Origin: Chrysemys picta bellii | Lineage: Eukaryota | Direction: 5' to 3' | NCBI RefSeq assembly: GCF_011386835.1 | Contig: NC_088800.1 | Location: 558,001-622,000 of the forward strand | Length of the DNA: 64,000 nucleotides | Shown here: piece after piece, positions 1-63,100 of the stretch | Layout: each line of letters opens with the position of its first letter | How positions within the stretch are numbered: position 1 is the stretch's first letter | Program-made: the position numbers and the translations under genes | The notes under the pieces: generated by a model | What the model saw: the letters and a program-made list of their open reading frames with translations, nothing else | The model's database searches: none | What the model was told of the DNA's origin: nothing

Positions 1-278
1 GAGGGGCAAGGGCAGCAGGGGGAGCGAGCGGGGAGGACCGGGGCCCCAGGGGGCGGGGGGCAGGCTGCCTGTTGCAGGCTGGGGCGGCCACACTGGCATG
101 TTGCGGTCCTGAGCTCACTGCGGCTCGCTGTAATCTCCTCTCCTGCCCGCCCCCACCCCCTGTGCGGTTCCTATTCCCATCACATCCTGCCCCCTCCCCG
201 TCTCTCTCCCACTCTCCGCGCCTGGCTCCAGCGCTCCCCGGCCGCCTCTCCGAGCTCCTAGCGCCCCGCTCCAGCGGC

Positions 279-20030
<19,752 letters not shown>

Positions 20031-35500: not shown

Positions 35501-38500
35501 AGGTGAGGCAGCAGCGGCTGGATGGTGCGGAGGAAGCCTGGGCGCCACGTGGGCACGTCCCCAAGGAGCTGAGCCTGCAGCAGCAGCTTGGCAAAGGCGC
35601 TTTTCTGCACCAGCTTCATGTGGGTGCTGTGACGCCGCAGAGCAGCTAAGCTGGAGGGGGCGGCACGTTAGAGCGGGCATGGCCTAGAGAGCCCCACTGA
35701 GCTCCGCCTGCCCGGCGCCAAGCTGGCTCGGCTCTCCTGCCCCAGTACCCGCTCCTCAGCCCTGGGGCACCCCCATGCTGGACTGGACAGCACGGCCTCT
35801 GCAAGGCAGGCCCTGGGAGAGCTGGGGGTCAGAGCAGGGGCTGTGTGACCCGGTGCAGGGGGCTCAGATCTGGGGCTGTGTGACCAGGTGCAGGGGGCTC
35901 AGATCTGGGGGCTGATCTGGTGGATGTGTGAGGGGACCAGGGCACATTACAGGTCATGCGGGGCACTGGGGAGCCGGTTATGGGGCACGCGGGGCTCAGT
36001 GTGGGAGTGGCATTACCAGGTGTAAGGGGCTCAGAGTGGGGGGGCAGTTTGAGGTGAGGCAGGGCTAGGGCTGAGGCAGGGGGTGTTACGGGGGCACGTT
36101 CCAGGGCCTCACTCACACGCTCTCATTGGCTAGCAGGGCAGGCGGGACTCTCATGATGTCGGACACGGCCATGAACGGCATGAACTGCGACAGGTCAACA
36201 AAGAGCTGCGGAGTGAGCTGAGGGAACCGGCCCATCAGCCGCGAGGCAAGAGACTGCAGCGCTTGCCCATCCGACATGGGAACCTGTGGGAGCAGCGGGT
36301 TAGGGCTCCCCGCACGGTGGCAGGACCCCAGCCCTTGGGGGCCAGCTGCCCCCATGTCCACGCGAGGAGAGCCCCTAATGCGGGCCAGTGGCCACAATGC
36401 ATCCTCATCGCTAAGGCACCAGCGACCCCCCGCCAGCGACCTGCCCCCTCCCGCTGGTGCATGCTGCCCACCTGCAGCCGGGGCCAGGAGCGGTGCAGCA
36501 GGGACAGGAAGCGCTGCACTGCCTCGCTCTCCGCCGACAGCAGCAGCTGCTGGAAATTGTCCTGTGGCATCTGCAGGTATTCCTGTGGGGAAGGACAGCG
36601 CGTCACGGCGGGGCCCACGGAGCTGCGCGGCCAGGGCAGGGCCCACGGAGCTGCGCGGCCAGGGCAGGGCCCAGCTAGGCTGGAGTCCCCATCAAACACG
36701 AGAGCGGGTGCCAGGGCAGGGTGCATGGGCTGCGGGAAGGTGGACGTGTCTTACTGGAGTACGGGGCACCCGCCCCCCCCCGGGGGCACCTATGGAATCT
36801 GGGGGTGCAGGGAGGGAGTGGGAACAGCCCCCAGGCCCTGCTGAGCGGGGTCAGTACCTGCACAAGGACTTCCAGCGCCGGGGCACCCTCTTCTCTTTGG
36901 ATCAGATCCCAGAGCACAGGCTGCCAGAGAGAGCAGGAGAGCTCTCAGCAAGGGACCCTCCGCTGGCCCATCCCCCCGCACCCCTGGACCCCCAGCACGC
37001 CTGCGGCTACCCTCCGATTCCCTGGGAAGGGGAATAAGCTGCGTTTGCCACTGGGGTGCTGTTGCCAGGGCCAGAGGCGGGACTTCTCCAGAGGTCTGGG
37101 CTCTTTCCCTCTGTCACTCTCCTGGCCCCAGGACAGTCCTGGATTCCAGCAGACCAACAGGAGCTCTTATTCCAGAGATGGGTCATCTGGGCCCCTGGCT
37201 GTGCAGGGCCTGACCCTTCCCCACAGCGCAGAAGCCACTGGGCTGCCTGGTGCGAACGGGGCAGGGGAACGCCAGGGTAGCAGCTGGGACTGTGCTCCAG
37301 GCAGTGGGCCACCGTGAAACCAGCAAAAAACTGTGTTCACCAAAGGCCCCCGGGTCCGGTGCTGCCCGACGGTGCCTAGCCTGATGGGACCCAGAATCTC
37401 CGGGGAGGTCTGTAGGGCTATGCAATTGCTCAGCTAGCTGTTAAATTCCCCATTAAGCCCCCCATGGTCGCTGCTGGGGAGCAGCACAAACAGGGCAGCT
37501 CACAGCCAGAGCTGAACAGGGGCTTGCGGACAGCCCTCGCCCCAGGGGACGACTAGGTCAGCTCTCTCAGGGGGTCTGTGGAGCCACAGAGCTCCCCAAG
37601 TGGCTCTAGGCAGACGGGCCACTCCCTCCCCACAGGGCATGGAACCGAGTTAGGGTGACCAGACAGCAAGTGTGAAAAATCGGGACGGGGGTGGGGGTAA
37701 TAGGAGCCTATATAAGAAAAACTCCCCAAAATCGGAACTGTCCCTCTCAAATCAGGACATCGGGTCACCCTAAACCTAGTCCCCGGGCTCCCAGGAACGA
37801 CCCCTAGGAAGGAGTGCTTGTCGCTGCAGCACGCTGGCCCTGCTGGCTCCGGTGCTGGACGGTGCACTGTGCTAGCCGAGTGGCCAGCCCTTCTCCTGGG
37901 GCTTCAAGCGGGTTCTGGGCTCAGCAGCGATTCACAGAGACCTCGGTTTGCAGCTGCTCAAAGCGCTTGGTCTCCTGCTCTCCCGGCAGGTCTGCCTTCC
38001 ATGCCAGACACCGCTGCCCTCGACATGCCCGAGGACACACACCTGTCCTGCACATGGCATCTGCCTTGGGTGGTTCTGCCACAACTCCTGCACTTTGGCA
38101 GGGGTTAGACTAGATGGGCTGCTGGTCCCTGGGGGTCTAGGATTTGTACTGGAGGGGAGTATGGGCTAGGGAGGGGGCAGTGGGCTAGGACTCCGGAGAC
38201 TGCAGGTTTGTTCCCGCCACTGCTGGGCTGCAAGCCCTCGTGCGCCTGGTGTCGGGCCCCGTGAGAAGCTCAGCTTTCATTGTGAACCAAGCACGTGGCT
38301 GCAGAGCGAGCCTTGAAAACAAGCCCCAGAATAGCCGGCGGCCGAGCAGCAGACAAAATTCATTCTCTTGTCAAATCTCGTGAAGTTTAGGGCCTGACTC
38401 AGGGTTTCCGGCCTCCCAGGGCTGATGACACGGTGTCTGTGCAGCATCCCGTGCTGGGGGCCTGCTCTCCCTTGGGGGGTTGTGGTCGTCATACAGAGCT

Positions 38501-41500
38501 GATGACAAGGGCAGTTTGGGATCTGTCTGGCACGGAGCGCTGGCCCCATGGCACATGCGCACACAAGTGGCTGTGTCAGGGTTTGCAGCCATGAGCGATC
38601 CCACACCTCGGGGGTGCACACAGGGTTGGAGCTTAGCCCCAGCATGGCTCGTGCAGCGAAGCCCGGGGCTGAGGCGGGCGGGGAGCAGGGGCAGGAGCCT
38701 GCTCACTCGCGCAGAGGCCGGGACGGCACCACTCACACTGAAGCAGCTCAGCAGCTCTTTCTTGACGGAGGCGTCACGCTCCTGCCTCAGGTACTGGCGC
38801 ACGGCCTGCAGGATGCTCCGCGAGGAGTTCCCCGTCAGCGAGGCCCAGAAGGAGCCGTTGTCCAGGAGGCTGGAGAGCAGGATGGCCTCGCTCAGCTGGT
38901 CCCTGGCTGCCTGCCCCACCTCGTCCAGCTCGGAGGAGGGCAGGGTGAAGTCCAGCAGCCGCAGGAGATAGTTCATGCTGAAGATCCAGCGGGACGTCTC
39001 CTCCTCGCAGGGCGTGAGCTGGGACACCAGCCCCAGCAGGTAGGACGCAGGGTCCCGGCAGAGCCGAGAGGCGTCCCCGTGAGAGGAAATAGGCAGGATG
39101 TCCAGGAGGCGCTGCAGGAAGCACTGCCCATTCTGCAGGGAGTCCAGGCAGTGATCCATGAGCCAGGGGTGGGAAGACACCAAAGACCGGAGGAGGGAGG
39201 AATTCTCACACACCAGCTCCTGGAAGCTAGCGGGGTTCACCCCCCGGCACTGCTCCATCAGGCTAGCGTTCCTGAGCGCCTGGAGGCTCCAGGCCTGGAA
39301 ATTGCAGGGATCAGAGTTCCCGAGCAGCGAGGAGTTCAGGGTCTTTGTCTGGAGCTGGCGGCCGTGGCAGAGTCTGGAGATCCAGGCGCTGCCATCCGCC
39401 TGCAGGCTCTCATTGGTGCACAGCCACTGAGTCCAGAGAGCCTGGTTTTCCAGAAAGCAGCTCCAGAAATCCCCCTGGGTCCAGGGGGCCCCGGGCAGCC
39501 CCTCCGGACAGCTGGCACCTTTGGGGGGCAGGGAGAGGTTGGCACACAACTGCTCCATCAGAGGCTGGTTGGGACTGGGCAGCTGCAGCAGGGAGGCATT
39601 GCTGCAGACCGTGGTGTTGAACTGGCCAGGGAAGTACTCCCTGCATGTCCTCACCCACATGGAGTCCCCGCTGGCGGAGGAGAAATACCAGCCGGAGCTG
39701 GAGCATGCGGCCCCCAGGTCTGAAGGAGGCTGGCTGGAGCTGTCTGAGCCATTGAATAGGCTGCAGTAAAGATACACAGTGAAGTTGGAGATGCCGGGCA
39801 GGCCTGGGATAGTGTCATTGCAGGCAGACTCCAGAACCTCGGCTGAGGGCCAGGGCGCACCCCAGGTGTCTCCAGATGCCCTCTTTGTGGCTTGGGGGGG
39901 CTTGCGGGCAGGCTGCATGCAGCTCAGGATTGGCGGAGGAGATGGGAAGGTCCTAGACCTGAACCCCAGCGTCCGGGCATTCCAGCTGATGTTGTGCCTG
40001 ATGCCCCTGTTAGCAGCAGACAGAGGAGCTGGTCCATCACCCTCTCCCTGGAGCCCATCTGCATGGGCTGGGGAAATCCCGCATGCTCGCCCTCGCCCCA
40101 AACCCTCTGGCCTTGCAATCCACACTCCACAGGCCAGGGCCCAGGGACACACTCTCCCGTCTCAGTCCTTCCACCACATCCCCCACACTCAGGCCCTGCC
40201 TCACCGCATACCCCTCAGCCACCCACCTCCTCGCCCTCGGCATAAACTGCCCCCACCCCCAGCGGGGGATCCTCCTCCTCTGTGCATCACTCAGCGTTCG
40301 CCTGGCCCCTCTCACATGGAGTCCCACAACTTCCCCACCTGACCCCAGTCCCTCCGGGCCAGGAGAGCCCCCTCCTGTCCCAACGCAAGGCCATGGGGGG
40401 GGGGGGGTGTCAGCACCTGTGGGGGAACCAGCTCCATACACAGCCTGATTGTTAGGGGGTGTCACAGCCACGGCTGCCATGTGCCCTGCGATATCCCAGC
40501 CCTGCAACTAGCACAGCTCCCTCTTGCCTTTGCAGCCCCCGTCCATAGGGAAGGAAAGGAATGTCTCTTCCTGTCCTCCCCGCAAGAGGCCAGGGATGCA
40601 ACCACAGAGCTCATGGGCCCAAAGTGGACCCAGCAGCTAGCACTCCTCTGCCCCAGCCCAGCCAGGCCCCCCTCCGAGAGCTCCTCCAGCAACTCTCCCC
40701 GGGCCGACGAGCAGTCGGCTCTGGAGCTAGGGCAGGGCCAGAGGAAGGTTACGGCCGAGGCGTCTTTGCTGAAATCCCGGGAGTCCCTGAGCCCAGGACT
40801 GGGGTGACCCTGCGTGGAGCCCGGCATGAGCAGGGGCTTTCCATCTAGAAGTTCTGGGAGCCCATGGGTCTGACTGCTGGCCACGCGCCGGCCCGCGCCC
40901 ATGACTCACCACAGCAGGAGCTGCTGCAGGGTCCCTGAAAAAGGAGAAGGGAAGGAGTGAGTGAGCATCTGGAGTCAGGCCGTGCAGCCCGGGCCTGGGG
41001 CCTCAGTGCCCCACGAGTCCTGGGAAGGAACGACTCACCTACAGTGCACTTCCCCTCTCGATCCGACTGAGGGACGCCGAGGGCCACCGAGACCTCGTCC
41101 ACCAGCAGACCCGTCACACGTGATACCTTCCTCCGGAAGCTGGTGTAGAGCGATCGGCCCATCCTCCGCAGGAGACGCTGCTTGGCCTCCTCCAGGGCCC
41201 CCCAGAGTGTGTCTGCAGAGCCCCCCTCAGAGTCCAGCCCTGGCTGCCTGGGCCGGGGGATCTGCAGGAGGCTGCCGGCATTGGGGTCCAGCTCTCGGAT
41301 GGCCCCGGGCAGCACGTGGAAGGGTTTCAAGTGTTCAGGAGCCAGGACGGGGCCTGCAGGCTGCAGACGGACCCTTGGCTTCCAGCTGGTGCCCGCAAAG
41401 AGCTTGAGCAGCTGCGACATCCAGTCTGTGCTGGAGCTGCAGTTCCCACGGCCTGTCAGGGGGCAGTCGGTGCCCTGCAAGCCAGGGCCGCCCTGGCCCA

Positions 41501-46514: not shown

Positions 46515-47559
46515 TAACGCTGCTTAGCTGGGAAAGCAGAACAAGACAGAACAGGCTACACCGGGGATGTAAAAGGAGCCAGCTAGGCCCCTCTTTACTC
46601 CTGGGATTGGAGAACAAAGAGCAGTGAGTGAAAGCCAAAAGCTACAGAAGGGAAACCCAGGTGCTTCGGCAGCATCACGCTAGTCTGCGGACCTTGCTGC
46701 ACCACGGGATTACTGAGGCAGAGCAGCTACCACACAGCTGGGGCAGGATTACATGGCTGCTCCCCCTCTTGCTTCTGGGGTCACCAGCTGGGGACCAGGA
46801 ATGGCATCTCCCCAGAACAGGGGTGGCACAGAGGTGTCCTGTGAGGGCTCAGAACATCTCTGCAGCCCCCAGCATTGGCCAGTCTTTGGGAAATAGCAGG
46901 GAGGCAGTGACGGGGAGGGGGGGCCGTGCTGTCATTGTCTTTGATGGGTGTGCTACGCATACACCCTGGCTGCAAATCCTCTGTCTACACTGTCGCTGAT
47001 AGGGAAGGGTGGGTCTCACAGGCAGATTGCAGCTAAGGGGGTGAGATTTATTGACAGACATTAAAACTTTTGCTGCTAGATTCTCTCATCCCTCCTCTTT
47101 GCCAGACGTCCCAATAACCTACCCCACTGATCAGCCCTTGGAGAGCAGTGAAAGGAAGCCATGGCTAGGTTCTGAACCCAAGTCACTGTCCCAAAAGCCC
47201 ATTATCCCTCACTCCCCCAGCTGCTGGGGGCACCTCCCTTCCCGGCTCCATTTCAGGGGGGCTGGCGGGGACTGAACAGGAACCGCTGCTGACCAGGAGC
47301 TCTGCAGCCCTGGGGCAGACAAAGGTGGAACCTCTCCCAGGGAGGTGCCAGATCCAGGCCCCCCAGGAGAACAGACAAGGAGGCACTTTCAGCTTCTCCA
47401 CCCTTCCCAGGCTGGAGGGAGCTGAGTTTGGAGCAGCCGGGGGAGGAGGGCCCGGGGCCTGCAGAGAAGCGGGGAGGGGGAAGCCCGGACCGGACCTGAC
47501 CGGACCCAGTGCAGCCTCAGCCTCACCTTGACACCAACCTCGTTGAACCGGCCCAGTCG

Positions 47560-47700
47560 CTGCCACGTGCCTGGACATTCCCACGTGTGCACAAGCCCCG
47601 CCCCAATCCGCGGCTTTCTGCGGCTTTGGCCAATCCGCGTGCGGGGGTGGGAGTCCTGTGGGCGGGGCCTGTCCCGGGAGAGCGGGTTTAAAACTCGCGC
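47560..47700 (+). promoter_or_regulatory. Probable ZIP core promoter (CpG island)
   Basis: CACGTG 47564 and 47582; TGCACAC on - 47585-47591; CCAAT 47603 and 47630; GC boxes 47596 and 47660; TATA-like TTTAAAA 47687-47693. Confidence 0.65.
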
Positions 47701-47729
47701 GGGCGGCCAGGGGGCCCCGGGGTGGCGTC

Positions 47730-47826
47730 ATGCGGTCCCTGCTGGCGGCCAAGCTGGGCTGCCTGCTCGGGCTGCTGGTCCTGCCACTGCTCTGCGGGCT
47801 GCTCCCCGTGCGGCTGCGGGCCGCGG
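47730..47826 (+). CDS. ZIP coding exon 1
   Basis: MRSLLAAKLGCLLGLLVLPLLCGLLPVRLRAA; donor G|GTGGGT, phase 1. Confidence 0.88.
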
Positions 47827-49222
47827 GTGGGTGCGGGGTCTCCCGGGGGGAGGGGCGGGATCCTGCCCCCCGCGGGCCGGGGTCTCCCGGGCGGGATCCT
47901 ACTCACGCGGGTTGGGGGTCTCCTGGGCGCCGGGTTCCCGCGGGCCGGGGTCTCGCGGGCGGGATCCTGCCCACGTGGACCGGGGTCTCCCGGGCGGGAT
48001 CCTACTCAAGCGGGCCGGGGGTCTCCTAGGATCCTGCCCCCCGCGGGCCGGGGTCTCCCGGGGGGAGGGGCGGGATCGATCCTGCCCACGCGGGCCGGGG
48101 TCTCCCGGGCGGGATCCTACTCACGCGGGCCGGGGTCTCCCAGCGGGGGGCTGCCATCCTGACTGTTCCGTCTCCGGAGCAGGGACCCGCGGGCGGTGGC
48201 GCAGCTTCGTTGGCTGCGTGGCCGGAGGCATCTTCCTGGCCGCCTGCCTGCTGGACATCGTCCCCGACTCTCTGTCCGACATGCGGGAGGAGCTGCGGAG
48301 ACAGCGGATCACGGTAGGGTACCCCGCACCCCCTCCCCGAATAACACTGGGATGGGGCCAGCTGGGCTCGCTGTTCCTCCGGTTCCCTGCTGCAGCCCCC
48401 CCCCCCATTGCAGCCCCCCACCCCCACCACACCCCCCCAGCTGGCCGTGGGGCCGTCTCCACCGAAGCAGGTCACTAGCGGCGGGTCGCTGCCCAGGGAG
48501 TTGCTCCGCTGGGTTGGGATGGCTGGACCCCTCTGCTCCGGCCAATGCTCTCTCTGCTTCCCCAGGTGGATTTTCCCTTTCCTGAGTTCGTGCTGACTCT
48601 TGGCTTCCTGCTGGTTCTCATAATCGAGCACGTAGTCCTGGACTGCAGTGAGCGGCGGGCAGGGGAGGCCACCCCCCTCCTCTCCTGTGGGGAGGCCACC
48701 CCTCAGCCAGCAGGCACTGGTGAGTGGGTGGTGGAGACGGGTGTGCCCCACTTGCCTGCAGACTTTCGGGTCCACTCGTCCTTCCGCTCCTTTGTCCTCT
48801 TCTTGTCTCTGTCGGTGCACTCGCTGTTCGAGGGCCTGGCCGTGGGGCTGCAGGACACGGAGTCCAAGGTGCTGCAGATCTGCATTGCCATCCTGGTGCA
48901 CAAGAGCGTGATTGCTGTCGGCCTCTCCCTCCTGCTGCTCCAGAGCCAAGTCCCCACCCGCTGGTTTGTGGCTTTGATTGGCACCTTCGCCCTCATGTCT
49001 CCCCTTGGCATCGCCGTGGGAATCGTGATGATGCAGAACCCGGGCCCCGGCAGCACCATGGCCCAGTGCCTGCTGGAAGGGATCGCTGCAGGGACCTTTG
49101 TCTATATCACCTTCCTCGAGATCCTGCCTCACGAACTCAACTCCCCAAAGTGCCGCCTGCCCAAAGTGCTCTCCATGCTGCTGGGCTTCTCCGTCATGGC
49201 TGCCTTGCGCTTCCTGGGCTGA
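47730..49222 (+). CDS. ZIP subfamily II zinc transporter (SLC39A1/2/3-like), 3 coding exons, 294 aa
   Basis: join(47730..47826,48183..48313,48566..49222) = 885 nt, in frame. 8-TM pattern with TM4 LSVHSLFEGLAVG, TM5 ILVHKS and TM7 LEGIAAGTFVYITFLEILPHEL. Confidence 0.93.
47835..48141. repeat. CpG-rich VNTR filling ZIP intron 1 (~9 units of ~35-45 bp)
   Basis: Recurrent cgcgggccggggtctcccgggcgggatcct. Confidence 0.88.
48183..48313 (+). CDS. ZIP coding exon 2
   Basis: TRGRWRSFVGCVAGGIFLAACLLDIVPDSL...RIT. Confidence 0.9.
48566..49222 (+). CDS. ZIP coding exon 3
   Basis: VDFPFPEF...MAALRFLG-TGA. Confidence 0.94.
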   Translation: MDFPFPEFVLTLGFLLVLIIEHVVLDCSERRAGEATPLLSCGEATPQPAGTGEWVVETGVPHLPADFRVHSSFRSFVLFLSLSVHSLFEGLAVGLQDTESKVLQICIAILVHKSVIAVGLSLLLLQSQVPTRWFVALIGTFALMSPLGIAVGIVMMQNPGPGSTMAQCLLEGIAAGTFVYITFLEILPHELNSPKCRLPKVLSMLLGFSVMAALRFLG

Positions 49223-51104: not shown

Positions 51105-54100
51105 CTGTAGGAAAGGAAGGTAGAAGAGGTCTGGGTGTTTGCTGCTGGTGAAGTAATGGCCCTGTCCCCCAACCACAGGGGCTTATCAGCTTGTAGCGAA
51201 TTACGTAAGTGGAGGAGACACAGTCCTGCAGAATGGCAAGGGCCAACCACTCCTGTGTTCAGATCTCTGCAGCTAGCGGCTTTCTGCTGGTCGGGAGCTG
51301 CCATGGTCCTGGAGCACCAGCCCCTCATGCAGCTGTACTGAGCAGCGGGGTGGAGAGGTGCTGATCGAACAGCATGACAGGCAGCTGAGGCTACATGGCA
51401 CAGCGATTACATGCTCAGGAGATGCTAAGTTGGGAGGAGCTGCACATCCCAGGGAGGTCAGAGAAATAAATGGAAGGGGTAGACAATCCAATGCAGTTCA
51501 GCCCGGGAGGATGCTCGTGCCAGGCCATGGGGCAAAGGCAGCGCCACTGTGGGCTCTGTGTGCAGAGCAGACCCTGCCCTGAGGTGGCGGCCCCTGGACC
51601 AGTCTCTTCCATTCTGGGCACCTAGTTATGAATGGGGGACAACTAGCCTTCCTGGCCAATAGCAATGGGCATGCCCTGCCCCAAGAGCAAACGGGTGGGA
51701 GCAGGCCTGGGGCATGGAAATTGCCTTGCAGGGAGCCCTGTTCCCTAGCTGGGGGGTTGTTTCACTGGTGCTGGGGGGAGGGAGGGCTGAGCTGAGAAGA
51801 ATGAAATGCTGCCGGCAGAAAGGAGGCCAGGCAGTGTCTCAAAGGAGGGGCAGGCGCACATCTTCCCTTGTTGGGCTTGCTCGCCCATGTGTGCTTAGGA
51901 ACCTGCCCCCCTCACCCTGCTGTTTGCCTCCGACTCACCTGCATAATGCTGCAGCCTCTTGCGCTCTTCCAGGTTGTGCTGCAGCTGCTCCAGCAGTTCG
52001 AAGTAGCGGAAGAGGGAGTCGCTGGGCCACACCACCTGCCCATCCTCATTTACCGCCACTAGGCTCTGCAGGTTCTGGTGGATGTATGTCTCCCAGTCCA
52101 CTGTCAAAGGCAAAGGCTGCAGCTTCAGGACTGGCAAAGGCCCCCCTCAATTCCCGTGCATCTCCTGCATGGTGGGATGAGATTCCTGCCCTGCTGTGAG
52201 GGGAGGTAAAGGGCCCTTCGGTCTCGAACGCCCCCTCCCCTTGCACATGGAACAGGGACTCCTGCTGCTGGGGGAAGGAGAGTGGTTCACTGTGGACTTC
52301 CCTTCTGCTGCTCTCTGCCCCTGCGCCCAAGCCTTGGGTGTGGTGCGCCCAGGAAGGGGTATCCCCAGGCTGCAGCCTCCCCAGCACAATGAGATGCAGA
52401 ACAGAAGCAGCGTTAGCTCAGCACCACTCTGCTCAGGCTCCTGCAGCTAGGCGAACGCTCCCCCTGCCCTAGGTGGGGCACGGGCACTTACAGTCCTTCA
52501 CGCTCGACTTCACTACCACCTTGTACTCCGACTGCGGCTCACTAGAGGTTGCCTCTGCTCCTGGGCCCACCTCTGAGCCTGGGGCTTGAGACCTGCTGAA
52601 GAGAGAGGAACCCAACGTATCGCTGGAGAGAAACGCTGCTGGTTCTAAACCCCACCACGGATGGCGACCCAGGTCAGCCGCAGCCCTGGGGCTGGCTCAG
52701 CCGTGGCCTGGAATAAAGGGCTTGGCAGGCAAGGTGTCCAGGTCCAGCTAGGGTGGGTGTGGGCGCAGGGGCTGTGCCCTGAGAGCCCTGTATCATATGC
52801 AGGTGCCTGTGCCCAGGGCTGAGTTTTCTGAGTTAAGGCCAAACCCTGCGGTCCCTGCCCTTCTGAGGACAGGGTGCTATGGTGAATGCAGGGGGGCTGT
52901 ACCCACTACTCTGGGGGACAGGTGCCTCAGGACTCACCCATCATTGCCCTACCTTAATGCTTATGGATGCCCACGCTCACCCCAAGGGCATCTCTGCAAA
53001 CCTCAATTGGAAGCAGCAGAGGAGAGCTAGGGATGTTAGTCATCCTGTGATCAAGCATGAGCTATCAGTGATGCACTGCAAAAAAAGGCAAATCCGCTCC
53101 TAGCAGGCAAAGTATTTCCAGCAGAGAGAAGTATTCATGCCAGTGCATGAGGCACTGTGTACAGTTCTGGTCGCCCATGGGCAAGAAAAATGAATTCAGA
53201 CTGGAACAGATGCAGAGAAGAGCTACTAGGGGAACGGAGGTCCTGCCTTATGAGAGGAGACTGGATGAGCTGGTCTTGTTTAGCCTGGCACAATGAAGGC
53301 AGAAAGGGGCTATGACTGCTGGCTATAAATCCATCAGGAAGATCAGCACCAGGGAGGGCGAAGGGCTATTGAAGCTAAAGGACAATGTTGGCACAAGAAC
53401 AAATGGGGATAAACTGGCCAAGAACAAATTCAGGCTGGAAATTAGAAGGTGGTTTCTAGCTATCAGAGGGGAGAACAAAGGATGGGGAGGGAGAAGATGG
53501 GGGAATAATAAGGACTTGGCTTTTCACCCAGGAACTAAGGAAGGAGCGAGCCTTAACTGGGCTTCACGGCAGCGGGGCTGGTGAAGTGCTCTGGGCTGAC
53601 CAGCATGGACCTTCATTTCTCTGCTGCCCGAAGGCCTCCCTAGGCGTGTCCAGGTGACTATAAACCTGCCTGTTTTCACAGCGTGTCCCTGCAGCCGCTG
53701 GGCGAGGTGCTTAGTCCCTGCAGAGTGGGCGAGTCTCTGCCAGGCTGTCGCAGTTGGACTCACTAGCAGAGCTCCTGCTGTGAAGCTGGAGCCCCAGAGG
53801 TTGTCTCCAGAGGTGGTGAGAGCGTGTGGCCAACCCTGAAGGCAGAGTGAGACCCCCAGAGGATCTGGCTCACCAAAGGGGCTCCTCCAAGAGACTGTTC
53901 CAAAGCTAGGGGCATAGCACCAACCCTGTGGATCTGTGCCAAGGGGCTTTTGCTTTCCCCTGCAGCGTGAGTGTGGGTCACTTGCCCAGATTATCTGGGT
54001 ATATCTCCGACCGTAACCCCCCGGTATTCACACCCTACACACTATTGTAATAGTCTTTGTACGAAATGTGCCTTGTGAGGTATCATTTGAAAACTACTAA

Positions 54101-57100
54101 CTTCCTGATCATTCGTATTCTTGTGATGCATGTACACGGTGTGGATTGAGTTATGGATACGTGCTACAGTTGTGACTAAACTGGGCATGCTGGGGGAGTC
54201 TGCTCTAGACAAAGGAATGTGTAGTTGATTCTCTGGCCAGCCTGGCCTTCAAGCAAGGACAATGAAGGTCCATTTTTACACATCAGGTAGACAAAGCTAT
54301 TAAGCTAATCCCTGGAGGAAGAAAGAGCATGGAGCTTCCTTCACCACCAGACTCCCTGTCGCCTTCCGCAGCTTGAATGAACGTCACTTTGAGGGGTGAC
54401 CTCAGAAAAGTTCATTGCAAAGATTTACTGGTCTGTAAAGAGCCTGAATGATCAGCAATGGAATCGGCTGACTGAATACAGTATCACTGTATTACAAAAG
54501 TCTCAAGTGAGGTCTCTTCTGGAATGCCACGCTGGTGAATAATATCATCGTGAGATGTCTGTATTAACCCTGTATAAGGAATCTGGATACTTAATGATAT
54601 TGTGCTTTAAAGTCTGTGGCCAATCAGGGAGAAAAAGGATCCCTCCCAGACCAAGGGAAGACACCTGTCTACCCGTCTCAAAACAACGGCAGCCCCATTT
54701 ACGTGCAGGGGGTGGGAAGCCCACAGGAAGCGGGGAAGTAGCATAAGGCCACGTGCCTCTTGAAACAAAGACATTGAACTTTGCGAGCTATATGCACGGA
54801 CAGATACTGTCTTTGGCATGTATCAGTGGACAGACAGAGTGGAACAGAACTCGTGCAAACAGAGAGAGGCCCTTCAGCCAAGCAGGAGTTGAAGTCTCTG
54901 GGAACTGAGGCTGTGTCTACACTACACAGCTTTTAGCAACATGGCTGTATCACTACAGATGTGCTGCTAAAAGTTGGGCAGTGTAGCCGCGGTTTGTCAG
55001 CTCTCCTGCCGCCAAAAAACTTCCACCCCCAACGAGCGACATTTGCGTTGTTGGCAGGAGCACTCCTGCCAACAACGTGCTGTTCTCACTGGGGCTTGTC
55101 ATGCCAAAACTTTTGTCTTTTGGGGGGAGGGGAGAGTTAACACCTCTGAAAGACAAAAGTTTTGTCGTTCAAATGCCAGTGTAGACATAGCCTAAGTGTA
55201 GGTGATAAACCTTCTTAGGCAAAGATCTTTCACCTAGAAAGACAAGGGTAACCAGCACCTGGTACTTCTGTGGAAGGTTCTGACAGGGAAAGTCAGCCAT
55301 GATGGCAAAGATGAATGACTGGTCAGAGACAACAGCTTGAACAAAGCCTGCAGCTTGCTGGATTAAGCTTGAGACTTTTAGATGTGTGTTGTAACCCTTC
55401 TAACTTTATTCCTGTTAGTTGGCATCACTGATCCTAGGACCTATTGTTAATACTTACTTTTTATTATTATTTTTACTGTAACCCAACTCAATGCTGTGTG
55501 TGTAGAAGAGGGTGTATTTACCCCAGTAAATGTGCTGTGATGTTCTTTTGTGTCTTGAGGAACAAACAAGCCATATTATGTCTCTGACCTGTCCAGGAGA
55601 GGGCTGGACATTACAGAGCACATGGATGGGGGAAGATTTAGGACTGGGTGTACGTTGGCATCACTCTGCAAGTAGCACCCACGCCTGGTAGAGAGCAGGG
55701 ACCGTGACTGGAGTGGAGCTGGCAGGCTGCTGGGGTCAGAGCTGCTGGACCAGGGCTATGAAGCACGCAGACACTGCGGGGGCTGACTGTGAACATGCTG
55801 GGCAGGGAGTTACAGTAGCAAAGCATTTGAGACCCCCAGGGTTACAGGGCAGGTGATGACTCAGCCCCTTGCTGCTCTGGATTGCACCCTTGACCCTGTA
55901 ACCATCTCACATAATCATCTCCTGCCACTGCAGGGGCCGTGGGCACTGGCGCCCCTTGGTCCCTCCTGGGTTCTGCCGGGGCACAGAACAGATGCGTCTC
56001 CTGGGGGCTGTCATACTTTGGTCTGATGTTGGTGGCGGGGGGGGACCAGTGGCCTGGGATGCACAGGAGGGCAGACTAGAAGGTGTGGTCCCTGGCTGCT
56101 AGGGGAACTCCCAGACCAGCCTGAAATGTGGTGGGTGCTGTGCTCACTCACCTGTCTCTAATCTGTATTTTAAATAAATCTGCTTTCTTCTGGGCCTCTA
56201 TCTGCTTCACCTCTTCAGCCAGGTCATTCCGGATAGTCTGGAAATTAGTCACTGACAAACCCAGAGCCCCCATTAAGCCCGGGGGATCCTGAGGGTCTTA
56301 GGAGGGACAGTGGGGGCATGGAGGCTCCCTACGGACTATTACCCTTCCTTGTACCATTGCTGCATGGAGCCCACTAGACTTTATGCCTGGTGAGCTGGGA
56401 TCTAGGGCAGCATCTAGAAGGTTATTTTAAAAACAGGGTTTATTTCTGCATTGTCTATTACCATATGAATATCAAATTGTACCTTCTTTTTGCTGGCGGT
56501 CTCCCTGGAGTACCACAGGGCTGGGCTGGGATTCCTTCAGCCCCTAACCAAAGGGGTAGGGTGTTGAACCTTTGGCACCAGTCCTCCCAGTTTCATAGAA
56601 TATCAGGGTTGGAAGAGACCTTAGGAGGTCATCTAGTCCAACCCCTGCTCAAATCATTCCAGCCAGGGCTTTGTCAAGCCTGACATTAAAATCCTCTAAG
56701 GAAGGAGATTCCACCACCTCTGTAGGCAAACCCATTCCAGTGCTTCACCAACCTCCTAGTGAAAAAGATTTTCCTAATATCCAACCTAAACCTCCCCCAC
56801 TGCAACTTGAGACCATTACTCCTTGTTCTGTCATCAGGTACCACTGAGAACAGTCTAGATCCATCCTCTTTGGAACCCCCCTTCAGGTAGTTGAAAGCAG
56901 CTATCAAATCCCCCCTCATTCTTCTCTTCTGCAGACTAAACAATCCCAGTTTCCTCAGCCTCTCCTCATAAGTCATGTGCTCCAGACCCCTAATCATTTT
57001 TATTGCCCTCCGCTGGACTCTTTCAAATTTTTCCACATCTTTCTTGTAGTGTGGGGCCCAAAACTGGACACAGTACTCCAGATGAGGCCTCACCAATACC

Positions 57101-60100
57101 GAATAGAGGGGAATGATCACGTCCCTCGATATGTTGGCAATGCCCCTACTTATACAGCCCAAAATGCCATTAGCCTTCTTGGCAACAAGGGCACACAGTC
57201 GACTCATATCCAGCTTCTCATCCACTGTCACCGCTAGGTCCTTTTCTGTAGAACTGCTGTCTAGCCATCAGTCCCTAGTCTGTAGCAGTGCATGGGATTC
57301 TTCCGTCCTAAGTGCAGGACTCTGCACTTGTCATTGTTGAACCTCATCAGATTTCTTTTGGCCCAATCCTCTAATTTGTCTAGGTCCCTCTGTATCCTAT
57401 CCCTACCCTCCAGCGTATCTACCACTCCTCCCAGTTTAGTGTCGTCTGCAAACTTGCTGAGAGTGCACAGTCCACGCCATCCTCCAGATCATTAATGAAG
57501 ATATTGAACAAAACCGGCCCCAGGACCGACCCTGGGGGCACTCCGCTTGATACCGGCTGCCAACTAGACATGGAGATGATTCAGTTAAACAGGTGTGACC
57601 GAATCACAATCCCCACCCCACAATTACTCTGCTTTCCTGTGCCTGGTCCCTGTCCTGCTGGGATTCTAGGAGTTTTCTAGTTGTCCAGAGAGTCTGCAAG
57701 GACCGGGGCAAGACATGCCCTGAGTTTATAAGGCGAAAGCCCCCCATATGAGCCTAAACCAGGTGCCACCAGAAGCTGAGAAGGGCCCATACTTTGCTTT
57801 GCAGGGGAACTAGATGTAGCAATAGTGAGCCACCATGGGCAGAGGGCTTTGCATGGGGGCCGCCAGACCCTACTGCATGCCAGCATGGGAGGCTGTAATG
57901 TTCCTGCAGCCTTGGCAGTGTGCGGGGCCTAGGCACTTACCCATAATTGCCACAAAGAAGTTCCTGAACATGAAGGATCCAATCAGCAGCCAGAGGATGA
58001 TGTAGAGGCTGCTGATGACCTTGTTCATCTCGGGTATCTTCCAGGTATCCTGGAGCAGGGCGTACCAGTGATCCATGGTGAAGAGGATGAAGAGTGTCAC
58101 CAGCGTGTTGGGGAGATCCCTGCAGGCAGAGAACAGCTTCAGGGCATGGTGCTTTGACCATGAGGCCTAGTGATGCCTGCGGGATCCAAGTTGTCTCTGG
58201 GCCACCTGCTGCTTTGCTGGTGATCTCTCGGCTGAGTCCAAGTGCAGAGGCAGTGGTGATGAGTGCTGCATGCTGCAGAGGAGGGGGCTGGCATCAGTTA
58301 GTTGTGGCCCTTATTCTGGGAAGGTGACAGCGTGACACTCAGGTGAGCAGTTTGCTTGGCCCCAGCATTCAAAAAAAAAGGCGCCACCCGCTGCGGCGCT
58401 TTTACTCACCCGGCGGCAGGATCTTCAGTGCTGCCGAAGACACCCGGAGCGAGTGAAGGGCCCACCGCCGAAGACCCAGAGCGCCGCCGGGTGAGTAAAA
58501 GCACTGCAGCAGGTGGTGCCTTTTTTTTGATCGCTCCCCCGTTCCCTCCACCTGGCTACGCCACTGCCCCCCTCACATGGAGGTCTAGACTAATATGGTC
58601 CAAGTCAGACACTGGCCAGGGCTTATGAGCTGCAGCCTTGTATCAATGCTACACGGCACCATGACTGCCCTCGGCATCTCCAAGAGCACCAGCAGTTCCA
58701 GAGTTAGACCACATACGTACACCGGAGTCTGAGGGGCGAGGTGGGTGCCATCAAGCACAAAGACCCGCTTTTGGCAGCTGCTAGGCCTTGCGGGTGTCCC
58801 ACGGGAGCCCAGCACCCATCAGGGCCCAGCTGTAAAGTGTCAGTGTATCCCCCAGCCCGCATCCCCACTGCTCCGCTCCTTCCAGCTGGCTCTGCCGCCC
58901 CATGTCCTCCCGGAGGTTGGGAGATCACCCCGCTGAGGAGCAGGAATAGAAAGGTGAATGAGTAGGACAGCAACCCCTATAGCCAGAGGGAAGAGGGTGT
59001 CTTGCTGCTGGGTGACAGGGCATTCCACTACCATAAGCAAGGAGATGTACCTGAAATACATGCTGTACTCCAGGTCGGTGCGGTCTGACCGACTGTAGCT
59101 CTTGAAGAAGAAGATGCCAGACACGGCAAACACGTAGAAGAAAACCACCAAGAGCAGCAGGATGAAGGTCATGGCCTGGGCAAGGGAGAAGCAGAGAGGA
59201 GCCGGGGCTGATGCTGCCCAGGGAGCTTACAGTCTAGATTAGACATAGTACAGCAAGGATGCTGCTCAACAAAGGGGTGGGCTAGGCCAAGGTCTCCTGG
59301 GGGTGGGGGGGTTGTTAAAAATTAACCTGTGTGTGAGCAATAGGGGCTGGGGTTCCATAAACAGGGCAGGTGGCAGTGCTGGGAGGCCAGTGCTATGTGC
59401 CCAGGGCAAGGCTGAGTGCTGGGAGACTAACCAACAGGAGGGAGTTTGGCACACATGCAGCTCCCCGCAAGCCCTGGCACCTGTCTCAGCATGCCCCCAC
59501 CTCACCGGTCTTGTACCTTCAAGGTCTTTGCTATTGCCAGGATGATCACCCGAACTTGCCGGAATTTGGAGAAGAGCTTTAAGGTGCGGAGGACGCGAAA
59601 GGCCCTGATGATTCTCATGGCAGCTATCTTGTTGGTTATGCCAATGAAGTCCAGGAACTCGGGGACCACAGACTATGAGCCAAGGGAACAGAGCAGCAAG
59701 ATGACCATGCTCAGGTTATGCTGCCCTGCACAGTCAGGCCATGCCACACCCCACCTGCCCCCTCCCCACACACACAGCCACTTAACAGGGCATCAACCCA
59801 CCACCACCCCTCTGCATTGCAGCCTTCTCCCCCAAGATTTGAGCCAGGCTGGCAGGGAGTGTAAGAGGGACCGGCTCTGAGTCGGCGCCCCCAGAATCAT
59901 GGCTTTAAAAATAATAAATTCTGGGTTCTGTCTTTGCTTTCTAAGTTCTGAGCCTTTAGGGGTCACATTTTCCAGCTTTTTCTCCCTAACCAGAAACTTC
60001 CCTTTTACTTTTTTTCTTATAATGAAAGCTGAGTTTCACAATCACATGACTCCAGGAGCTGGGGCCAGAAGAGACACCACATAGCCCAAAGTGCTGATGC

Positions 60101-63100
60101 TGGAACTGGGTGATGGACTGGAACCCCTAGAGGGCAGATGTAAGCATCACAAAACCACTGGTAGTTTTGAGGCATTTGGGCACCACAATACATGACCAAT
60201 AACGAGCCTGAGTAGCCAAAGAGGAGCAGTCTCTGTCCTGCATTGGGACCCCTTGAGAAAGCCCCCTGAACTGTGAGTCCCACCAGACCTTTCTGGGCAC
60301 AAGGCTACTCGAGGTGATGAAGCAACAGGGAGCTAGTCTTGTGGTCCATGCATTGCCCTTTGCTTCCCCTCCCCTGTTGACTCCCCCGTGTCTCTCACCA
60401 CCACAGTAACGCTGAAGTCGAAGACATTCCAGCTGCTTTTCCAGAAGCCTCTGAAACTGACAATCCAATTCAGCAAAATCTCCATGATAAAAATGAGGAG
60501 GATGACCCAGACAGTCACCTCTAAGGTGAGCTTCAGGCTCACCAGGCTGGCATCCATCTTGTCCATCACCTCTGGGAAGCACAAGATACAGTTGCTGAAG
60601 CCTGGCTCCAGCAAAGTGTTGACTGGGGAACGGAAATACCATGAAGGGGGGACGGACAGAAACTCCTTGTGTATCACTGACTATTCGACATGTCCAGCCC
60701 CAGCTGAGGATCCTGCCATGCTCAGTCAAACTGGACCTGGAGTCGGAGGGCACCAGTTGAGAAGCACTAAGTAACTGGTCTCTGGGAACTCGCAGCACTC
60801 AGGCATTTGCTGGCTGTGCCCTGTGGGGCAGACTGTTCAGGGTGCACGTTGCTGCTCCATACACTCCTAGGGTGCTAGTGGCGGTGGTACCCTGCCTGGT
60901 AACGTTTAGCATAGTCAAGTCCTTCTCCTCTGGCCCTGGAAGCGGCTCCTCGCTAGTGGAGACTGGAGATGTGAGGACTCTTGGGGGAGGTGGGCACAGG
61001 AGAGGCCTCAGCAACTCCCTCCCCCACATCCTGTCTCAGTCAGCCCAAGCTTGGATTGTGGCCTCCTTGCACCAGGGACTTCAATCTCTGCCAGGCACCA
61101 GAGCCTCTATAACAAGTGGCGCACTGTAGAAGGACGTCGCCCTAGTGAAAAGGGCTGAGTGGGGGCTGAGTGCCTAAGCCCTGTGGGAGACAGGGACATG
61201 GAGGGGAGACAGCACCAGCCAGGAGTGGAAAGAGCTGGGAGAGGTGAGACTTTGGGCAGGGGAATGAGCTCGTGGAAGGAACTGGTGTCCAGTAATGAAG
61301 GGCTCTGAGCTCTCCACCTCTATGTCACTGGCTCTAGGCCAGGGCAGCAGTGATTGAGAACAGTCACCATCTGATGGCTAGTTGGTGGCTTAGCTGAAAT
61401 TAGATGGTGCTCTGAATTCAATACGTCGTGGACAGGTGCCTACACCACAAAACCACCATAACTTGGTTCTCATTGGCAGCCTCCTTGCTCCAATTATGAA
61501 CTGGCCCAAGAGACCCCTCTTGCCTCTGGAGGCAGGCTGCAGGGGCCTGGGCCCACAAGCACTATATATGCTTGGGCACAGAGGGGCTCAGCTCCCAAGG
61601 CTGCCAGGCTGGCACTACTTGTACGCGCATGGAGGCCCTGTCTCCCTCTCACCGCTCTTGATCATAAGAACCAGCATGTTCAGGAAGATGAGACAGATGA
61701 TGAAGCTTTTGAAGATGGTACCTGGGGTTTCTTGCTGAGAAATATTCAAAAAACTGTGTTATTCCGTCAGACTCTACAGGGGCTGGGGCATCTACGCTTG
61801 AGAACTCAGAAGACAATGGGTAGTATCCAGAGCAGCTCTACTGCTGAAGTAACAGAGCTCCACACACAACCCCCAAAGGAGCACAGCATCCCATAAAGCC
61901 CAAATTCCAGCACAAGCATCCTAACACACCCTCAACATTGTGCCTCAGCCTCTGGACCGGCAGACAGGAGATCATGAGCTGTTTGCCCATGTCAGAGGAA
62001 AGGCATGTGGAGAAACAACCATCCACCTCTAGCTTGGAGCCTCAAAGTGCCCATTTCCTGGCCTTTATCTCTACCCTGACCACCGTCCCCATGGCACTTA
62101 CCCCACCCCTCATTAGGCAACAACAATTCAGATTTCATCCACTAAATTGGACTTTATATACAGGTGGGAAGCACTGACCAGTAGAACAGAGGTGGGCAAA
62201 CTATGGCCCGCGGGACTGTCCTGCCCGGCCCCCAAGTTCCTGGCCCGGGAGGCTGTCCCCCCCCTCCCCCCCGCAGCCTCAGCTCTCTCCGCCGCCAGCG
62301 CAATGCTCTGGGCGGTGGGGCTGTGAGCTCCTGGGGCAGCAGAGCCCGGCCTGACCCGGTCTCTGTGCTGCGTGGTGGAGGCGGCGGTGGCATGGCCTGG
62401 CTCCAGCCAGGTGGTGCGGCTGTAGCACCACCAGCCACCGGTGCTCCAGGCAGCACGGTAAGGGGGCAGGGAGTGGGAGGGTTGGATAGAGGTCTGGGGA
62501 GTTTGGGGTGGTGGTCAGGGGTGTGGATAGGGGTCGGGGCGTTCGGGGGGAAACGGGGTTGAATGGGGGCTGGGGGGGAGTCAGGAAGAAGGGGTGGTTG
62601 GATGGGGCAGGGGTCCCGGGGGGCAGCCAGGAAGGAGGGGGGTTGGATGGGGTGGCAGGGGTCCGGGGGCGGTTAGGGGACAGGGAGCGGGGGTGTGTGG
62701 ATGGGGCAGGGGTCCCGGGGGGGGGGCCATCAGGGAACGGGAGGGTTGGATGGGGTAGGAGTCCTGGGGGGGTGGGGAGTGGAAGATAGGAGGTGGGGGC
62801 CAGGCCATGACTCCCTCCCCTAACCGGCCCTCCACACAATTTACAAAACCCGATGCGGCCCTCAGGCCAAAAAGGTTTGTCTGCCGCTGCACTAGAACCA
62901 CAGAATACAGAGATGGAAAAGATTTATCCAGCCCCCTGCCGGTCAACTCTCCGCTTTGTCCAGTCCCAAGCTACTGGGATTCCATCACTTCTCTTGCAGC
63001 TGATTCTGCCTATCACACTTAGGGTCTATTTTTTCCTTCTCTTCATACCAGCCCCCCTGACTCGCCCAATGGCAGAGTCAGTCCTGATTTGTCAAAGGAT

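Follow-up and report, generated by a model that had tools for sequence, protein, structure and literature searches.

Vertebrate zinc biology relies on a mammal-derived list of 14 SLC39 genes. The described systems closest to the gene reported here are the 'Zip1' of teleosts (e.g. zebrafish DrZIP1), tetrapod SLC39A2 (ZIP2), mammalian SLC39A1 (ZIP1) and BbZIP of Bordetella bronchiseptica. The gene itself was found in a 64,000-nucleotide stretch of Chrysemys picta bellii DNA (contig NC_088800.1, positions 558,001 to 622,000; hereafter the window), where it lies between STRC (stereocilin) and CATSPER2. It is assigned to a lineage referred to in this report as ZIPX, the members of which are named 'ZIP1-like' (tetrapods) or 'ZIP1/slc39a1' (ray-finned fishes) in databases. 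What is new is a correction of orthology and gene inventory rather than a mechanism, and databases already list the gene, misleadingly named; the best protein match was the Chrysemys picta bellii 'zinc transporter ZIP1-like' (99% identity).

Zinc uptake increases when zebrafish zip1 is overexpressed, and ovary is the tissue in which the gene is most strongly expressed, as summarized from Qiu et al. 2005 in a passage of PMC3944790. DrZIP1 is given as 46% identical to human ZIP1 in a passage of PMC5053974, a value that fits the 44.7% identity to human ZIP1 of a ZIPX-type fish gene rather than the ∼54% of a true-ZIP1-type gene. A carp genome paper remarked that zebrafish SLC39A3 groups with SLC39A1 genes and that SLC39A2 occurs in no fish genome (PMC4281218). 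Both remarks fit the picture of ZIPX and true ZIP1 developed below, and the literature search returned no description of the ZIPX lineage beyond them. According to one preprint, FrZIP2 is a close homologue of ZIP3. The turtle protein resembles teleost 'Zip1' in its clade, in its length of ∼300 aa, in 55-59% identity and in a position that is also STRC-adjacent in eel and sturgeon. With mammalian ZIP1 it shares membership of subfamily II, the eight-helix layout, the motifs of transmembrane helices 4 and 5 (TM4 and TM5) and ∼44-48% identity, but ZIP1 forms a separate clade, lies at a bZIP/CRTC-like locus and has an N-terminal extension of ∼28 aa that ZIPX does not have. Tetrapod ZIP2 falls into a joint clade with ZIPX and, like ZIPX, has an N terminus that is short compared with that of ZIP1. 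It differs in its METTL17-like locus and its longer branch, and it coexists with ZIPX in turtles, squamates and frogs.

The affinities of the window gene were assessed in a maximum-likelihood tree of 95 sequences (IQ-TREE, LG+C20 with posterior mean site frequencies). All true ZIP1 sequences, sharks to mammals, fall into a single clade (97/89) whose branching follows the species tree; it contains the fish genes named 'ZIP3' or ZIP1-like and excludes the window gene. The latter falls in a turtle ZIPX group (100/99) within a clade of ZIPX and ZIP2 (100/100, on a long stem) that also includes the 'ZIP1' of ray-finned fishes. A topology joining ZIPX with ZIP1 was rejected by the approximately unbiased (AU) test (p-AU 1.6e-6; difference in log-likelihood, 60.8). 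Individual alignment columns gave three derived states common to ZIPX and ZIP2 at which ZIP1 equals the outgroups, 10 conserved changes private to ZIP2 and none that unites ZIP1 and ZIP2 against ZIPX. Given the full support for ZIPX with ZIP2 and the rejection of ZIPX with ZIP1, the nearest mammalian relative of ZIPX, as judged from these alignments, is SLC39A2 and not SLC39A1. The preliminary description of the locus had proposed an ancient paralogue; this stood up in both tree and synteny, but the nearest mammalian relative had to be corrected to SLC39A2. ZIP2 proper forms its own clade (100/99) on a long stem (0.71), with the window gene outside it. The presence in turtles of a ZIP2 of their own, beside a METTL17-like gene, means that turtle ZIPX and ZIP2 are not 1:1 orthologues.

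Pairwise identity of ZIPX is 47.6% with turtle ZIP1 and 46.4% with turtle ZIP2, so that raw identity hides its kinship with ZIP2, which may explain the name 'ZIP1-like' given by annotation pipelines. These names and the similar identities are also what would be expected if ZIPX were simply SLC39A1 or SLC39A2 relocated in reptiles with no extra paralogue, a reading to which practically no credence is given. It is refuted by the occurrence of ZIP1 (P0288, P0313), ZIP2 (P0409, P0416) and ZIPX (P0006, P0005) at three separate loci in the same turtle species, by the AU test that rejects ZIPX with ZIP1, and by the STRC-linked position common to eel and sturgeon. The neighbors of turtle ZIP2 are an Rsm22/METTL17-like gene and an olfactory receptor, and those of turtle true ZIP1 are a bZIP gene on one side and a TORC/CRTC gene on the other; the window gene has neither the SLC39A1-type neighbours (bZIP/CREB3L4-like, CRTC2-like) nor linkage to METTL17, and Chrysemys has its own ZIP2 (P0414) apart from it. 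One-to-one orthology with SLC39A1 or SLC39A2 was not found, the gene lying outside both clades and at a different locus.

The three genes coexist in turtles, squamates and amphibians, in agreement with the earlier view of a separate paralogue, and many single species have both ZIPX and true ZIP1, often with ZIP2 too. Examples with ZIPX and true ZIP1 are Carettochelys, Emydura, Rhineura, Eublepharis, Elgaria, Pogona, Rhinatrema, Ambystoma, Conger, Megalops, Anabas and Lampris. In many fishes true ZIP1, which was found from sharks to mammals, is labelled ZIP1-like or ZIP3, and the Anabas member of its clade lies beside a TORC/CRTC gene, as does turtle ZIP1. The second fish gene can be read on both grounds as true ZIP1. 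Several other names are misleading: 'C-C chemokine receptor type 5-like' for Platysternon ZIPX (P0003), 'METTL17 isoform X5' for Dermochelys ZIP2 (P0413), and ZIP3 for several fish true-ZIP1 genes (P0371, P0374).

The order of genes in the window is CKMT1(+), STRC(-), ZIPX(+), CATSPER2(-), with ZIPX head-to-head with STRC and tail-to-tail with CATSPER2. In Carettochelys (L001), a 1840-aa STRC-sized gene lies head-to-head with ZIPX and a 609-aa Ion_trans gene lies tail-to-tail with it. The lizard Zootoca has Stereocilin(-), ZIPX(+) and a gene resembling protein disulfide isomerase (PDI) with two thioredoxin domains(+), and the eel has Stereocilin(-), 'ZIP1'(+) and a PDI-like gene(+). In a sturgeon (L005), uncalled STRC exons(-) at 1405-2933 are followed by ZIPX(+), an Ion_trans gene(-) and a PDI-like gene(+); the exons of the Ion_trans gene match turtle CATSPER2, with 71% identity in the pore exon. 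With STRC next to ZIPX at the turtle, lizard, eel and sturgeon loci, and a CATSPER2-like gene on the other side in turtle and sturgeon, STRC-ZIPX-CATSPER2 is judged from comparative gene order to be ancestral for bony vertebrates, and ZIPX would be the copy remaining at an ancestral STRC-[ZIPX]-CATSPER2/PDIA3 locus that predates the split of ray-finned fishes and tetrapods. By the same comparisons, fish 'zip1' is the positional and phylogenetic counterpart of turtle ZIPX. The earlier conjecture that fish 'zip1' is not the true SLC39A1 orthologue was borne out by the tree grouping and by the STRC linkage in eel and sturgeon. SLC39A2 would then be a fast-evolving sister at the METTL17-like locus, and SLC39A1, next to a CRTC-like gene, a more remote paralogue.

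The distribution of ZIPX was taken from the best 120 matches to its exon 3. Identities were 82-99% in turtles, ∼58-65% in amphibians, including the Xenopus tropicalis 'slc39a1 like' protein (P0010), ∼58-62% in squamates, 55% in one lungfish, 59% in one sturgeon and 54-60% in teleost 'ZIP1', and none of these matches was named ZIP3. The teleost values exceed those obtained with true ZIP1, as the preliminary description had suggested from motifs. ZIP2 was found in a frog, turtles, tuatara, squamates, alligator and mammals, and the ZIP2 search returned none from fish.

The branching order within the ZIPX and ZIP2 clade bears on when the two separated. Fish 'ZIP1' (100/100), tetrapod ZIPX (99/95) and a group of lungfish with ZIP2 (96/87) form a polytomy, and the AU test rejected neither a single clade of fish and tetrapod ZIPX (p-AU 0.45) nor a topology with fish outside a clade of tetrapod ZIPX, lungfish and ZIP2 (p-AU 0.23). 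The latter would be consistent with a split of ZIPX and ZIP2 in the lobe-finned or tetrapod stem, with fish 'zip1' a co-orthologue of both and ZIPX a lost sister copy of the SLC39A2 that mammals keep. This late duplication, to which we assign a chance close to even, is favored by the polytomy, by the lack of a fish ZIP2 in both our search and the carp study (PMC4281218), and by the sturgeon ZIPX, which scores as high against turtle ZIP2 as mammalian ZIP2 does. However, the AU test accepts equally well a clade of fish and tetrapod ZIPX, with an older ZIP2 that ray-finned fishes would have lost, and the lungfish evidence consists of one single-exon sequence. The STRC locus common to fish and tetrapod ZIPX might seem to favor that older split but is expected under both scenarios.

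A broader synthesis is offered tentatively, at somewhat less than an even chance. ZIPX would be the conservative parent of SLC39A2 and one of three sisters from whole-genome duplication, namely ZIP1 beside CRTC2 (human 1q21), ZIPX (in the region corresponding to human 15q) and ZIP3 (19p13), with ZIP2 as an offshoot that arose later, changed its place and evolved fast. In mammals and archosaurs the parent would have been deleted from the STRC-CATSPER2 interval and only this offshoot retained, and fish 'zip1' and 'zip3' would be misnamed copies of ZIPX and true ZIP1, respectively. If this were so, findings on zinc transporters in zebrafish would have been carried over to mammalian genes that are not their counterparts.

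The ZIPX gene of the window occupies 47730-49222 (+) in three exons; its coding sequence of 885 nt gives a 294-aa protein with a single terminal TGA, both introns are GT-AG and the window contains no N. Its start, end and length agree exactly with those given at the outset, and the three motifs then quoted are present in the translation. Exon lengths of 97, 131 and 657 are identical in the NCBI model of the 294-aa Carettochelys protein (P0005). A processed retrocopy is ruled out by the two GT-AG introns at conserved positions, those of the annotated Carettochelys model, and by the CpG island, in keeping with the earlier remark that the gene is not a simple retrocopy. Intron 1 measures 356 bp in the window against 279 bp in Carettochelys, a minisatellite accounting for most of the former.

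The Pfam Zip profile (PF02535) matched exon 3 with E=3.1e-43 and 148.7 bits (cut-off, 35.1), and exon 2 matched the N-terminal part of the profile; membership of the ZIP family is accordingly far beyond chance. Assignment to subfamily II follows from the grouping with vertebrate ZIP1 and ZIP2 apart from invertebrate ZIPs, the length of 294 aa and the TM5 sequence AILVHKS. There is no long N-terminal ectodomain, and TM5 has HK, unlike the HEXPHE motif of the LIV-1 subfamily. An AlphaFold2 model was built on the Platysternon protein (P0003, 96% identical to the window protein) with an 86-sequence alignment; it comprised eight helices with a predicted local distance difference test score (pLDDT) of 85 and a predicted TM-score (pTM) of 0.77. 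When this model was compared with the Protein Data Bank (PDB) by Foldseek, the only significant matches were BbZIP entries (5TSA, 6PGI, 7Z6M and 8GHT; probability 1.0, TM-score 0.53-0.69). By contrast, identity to BbZIP is only ∼19-20%, exon 3 searched by sequence alone against the PDB gave no match at E<=1e-3, and ZIPX has a Lys after the TM5 His; in subfamily II this Lys would stand in place of a second metal site.

Exon 3 encodes the motif HSLFEGLAVG in TM4 as well as the His-Lys pair of TM5. The TM4 pattern H-S-x-F-E-G and the TM5 pattern H-K vary little or not at all among ZIP1, ZIP2, ZIPX and outgroups, and H162, E166, G167, H189 and K190 (P0003 numbering) are invariant in 86 such sequences and present in the window protein. 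In ZIP proteins these TM4 (H-S-x-x-E-G) and TM5 (H-K) residues line the transport site for metal, and ZIPX would most likely carry Zn2+ into the cytosol, either from the cell exterior or from the lumen of a compartment; transport of this kind has been reported for zebrafish DrZIP1. Comparison of the window gene with Carettochelys ZIPX gave synonymous and nonsynonymous divergences of dS 0.31 and dN 0.053 (dN/dS 0.17), and ZIPX is under purifying selection.

A decaying relic, that is an unprocessed pseudogene whose frame happens still to be open, might be suspected from the long stem branches of amniote ZIPX (0.38+0.28 in turtles, 0.6 in squamates), the changed cytosolic loop of the turtle protein and the apparent loss in other amniote lineages. 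The absence of any stop or frameshift in the ZIPX of four turtle families, the dN/dS ratio, the retention of all invariant transport-site residues and the intact CpG island make this improbable. The combination of gene structure, family, predicted fold, conserved residues, selection, phylogeny and synteny points with considerable confidence to a functional subfamily II ZIP (SLC39) importer gene of the ZIPX lineage that has been kept at the ancestral STRC/CATSPER2 locus.

A number of observations weigh against this assignment or parts of it. The 95-sequence tree was built without vertebrate ZIP3 and without a zebrafish sequence; a search for vertebrate ZIP3 among 50% representatives gave no genuine member, the twenty named candidates being amphioxus, Ciona, arthropod, coral and unnamed metagenome proteins. 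The placement of DrZIP1 in the ZIPX clade is deduced from its published length, the 46% identity and NCBI naming. Two features set the locus apart from the teleost 'Zip1' system. The 'ZIP1' of the percomorph Takifugu lies away from STRC in a rearranged setting (neighbors TMEM208, a CRAL_TRIO gene and a hydrolase), and the cytosolic TM3-TM4 loop of turtle ZIPX (residues ∼112-150; 48650-48790) is without the histidine-rich run (HGHGH..., HxHVDF) kept in fish and amphibian ZIPX; only H138 and H146 are left, and squamates keep a little of it. Given the loss of this run, the regulation or affinity of turtle ZIPX may differ from that of the fish and amphibian members, and zinc import by the window gene is a prediction supported by the literature on its fish orthologue group. 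Frog ZIPX loci (Spea, Pyxicephalus) showed no neighbors within 10 kb. Finally, the best 120 matches to exon 3, which are annotated proteins rather than the results of genome searches, included no mammal, bird, crocodilian or tuatara.

Searches with true turtle ZIP1 or ZIP2 as query do readily return the groups missing from the ZIPX matches. Because no ZIPX was found there, the gene has probably been lost in mammals and archosaurs. The earlier claim of loss in mammals thus gains support from the annotated proteins, and its statement that the gene is apparently absent from the human locus is backed by those matches and by general knowledge of that locus. For human 15q15.3 we take the order and orientation CKMT1-STRC-CATSPER2 to be as in the window minus the ZIP gene.

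ZIPX would add a fifteenth SLC39 lineage that is at least as old as the bony-vertebrate ancestor. It survives in turtles, squamates, amphibians and ray-finned fishes, and the matches included no copy from a mammal or archosaur. Since fish 'zip1' is ZIPX, 'zip1' data should not be mapped onto mammalian ZIP1; the kinetics, expression and zinc-response data for zebrafish and pufferfish 'zip1' would be better compared with ZIPX and ZIP2, and the real SLC39A1 counterpart in fish would be the gene often labelled 'zip3' or 'ZIP1-like'. SLC39A2 would gain a slow-evolving sister for reconstructing the changes in a fast-evolving transporter. The STRC-CATSPER2 interval would be a defined deletion site; in human, this region is known for deafness-infertility deletions.

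The features of the window are collected in the table. The island at the start of the gene, the head-to-head STRC and the tail-to-tail CATSPER2, as described previously, were recovered from GC and CpG values, from Pfam and tblastn matches and from PDB matches, respectively. The GC/CpG values and the motif scan suggest that the island serves as the ZIPX promoter, in which case transcription would start within it, facing STRC. A scan for metal-response elements in the putative ZIPX promoter gave one TGCACAC, judged no more than chance, and DNA conservation between turtles was too even (68-81% in exons, introns and intergenic DNA) to delimit exons or regulatory blocks.

Table. Features of the window, with positions counted from its first nucleotide
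Feature	Position	Strand	Basis or remark
CKMT1-type mitochondrial creatine kinase, exons	15466-18841	+	signature scan; PDB match to U-type mitochondrial creatine kinase (9e-47); upstream of STRC
STRC (stereocilin), part	34333-40152	-	includes large exon 38374-40152; gene extends on both sides; 5' end toward ZIPX
CpG island	47250-48250		GC 0.68-0.77, CpG observed/expected 0.53-0.76; spans 5' flank, exon 1 and intron 1; faces 5' side of STRC
CCAAT boxes	47603, 47630		in CpG island; motif scan
GC boxes	47598, 47660, 47701		in CpG island; motif scan
TTTAAA	47687		in CpG island; motif scan
ZIPX coding exon 1 (ATG; TM1)	47730-47826	+	97 nt, phase 1 end; GT donor 47827
GC-rich minisatellite in intron 1	47849-48140		Tandem Repeats Finder: period 35 / 103 bp, ∼2.7-6 copies, 81% matches
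ZIPX coding exon 2 (TM2)	48183-48313	+	131 nt; AG acceptor, GT donor; Pfam Zip profile positions 36-66
ZIPX coding exon 3 (TM3-TM8, cytosolic loop; TGA stop 49220-49222)	48566-49222	+	657 nt; Pfam Zip match
Candidate polyadenylation signal ATTAAA	49632-49637	+	∼410 nt past stop; read off sequence
CATSPER2, exons	51898-61758	-	stop-free segments with S1-S6 and TMDHW pore; PDB matches
CATSPER2 C-terminal segment	52146-51898	-	
CATSPER2 pore/S6	58166-57873	-	
CATSPER2 S5	59226-58843	-	
CATSPER2 S4	59672-59505	-	
CATSPER2 S2-S3	60680-60336	-	
CATSPER2 S1	61758-61618	-	

Identification of the STRC exons rested on the Pfam Stereocilin profile (PF21058), which scored 30.1 bits, above threshold, on the 593-aa open stretch of the large exon, and on tblastn with the stereocilin part of P0125, which aligned at 40023-38734, 36283-36116 and 34473-34333. 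P0125 is a fused model from the lizard Phrynosoma, with STRC exons and a C-terminal ZIPX domain, under the UniRef name 'Stereocilin LRR domain-containing'. In lizard, eel and sturgeon, the STRC gene likewise matches the large exon. The best PDB matches of the CATSPER2 segments were CATSPER2 chains (9ubw_B and 7eeb_B; E=3e-23 and 2e-11), and CATSPER3 and CATSPER4 chains were far weaker (E 1e-3 to 1e-4). Pfam scans of the other long minus-strand open reading frames (ORFs) in the window were empty, as expected of spurious ORFs in GC-rich DNA. The idea, raised in the preliminary description, that sperm or hair cells co-express ZIPX and either CATSPER2 or STRC is speculation.

In the Carettochelys annotation, the 1840-aa STRC-sized gene begins at L001 10002, which would place a minus-strand ATG over the ZIPX ATG in a shared CATG (L001 10000-10003; window 47729-47733). 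Its counterpart in the window, the minus-strand ORF 47183-47752, does not have the look of a signal peptide. The overlapping starts may be an annotation artefact or may reflect a true bidirectional promoter. The presence of a CATSPER2-like gene in sturgeon is of note in that CatSper genes are reportedly missing from teleosts.

A reverse-transcriptase-like open stretch (FADDTKLGG...) at 56689-57488 (-), within a CATSPER2 intron, is probably a fragment of a long interspersed nuclear element. Its DNA and a ∼780-bp block at 10207-10983 match the same parts of the Carettochelys sequence (L001 2280-3066 and 19172-19953, two inverted copies), a pattern that suggests an interspersed repeat family. The left edge of the window (1-2000) is very GC-rich, with GC 0.75 in the first kb, and may be another CpG-island promoter.

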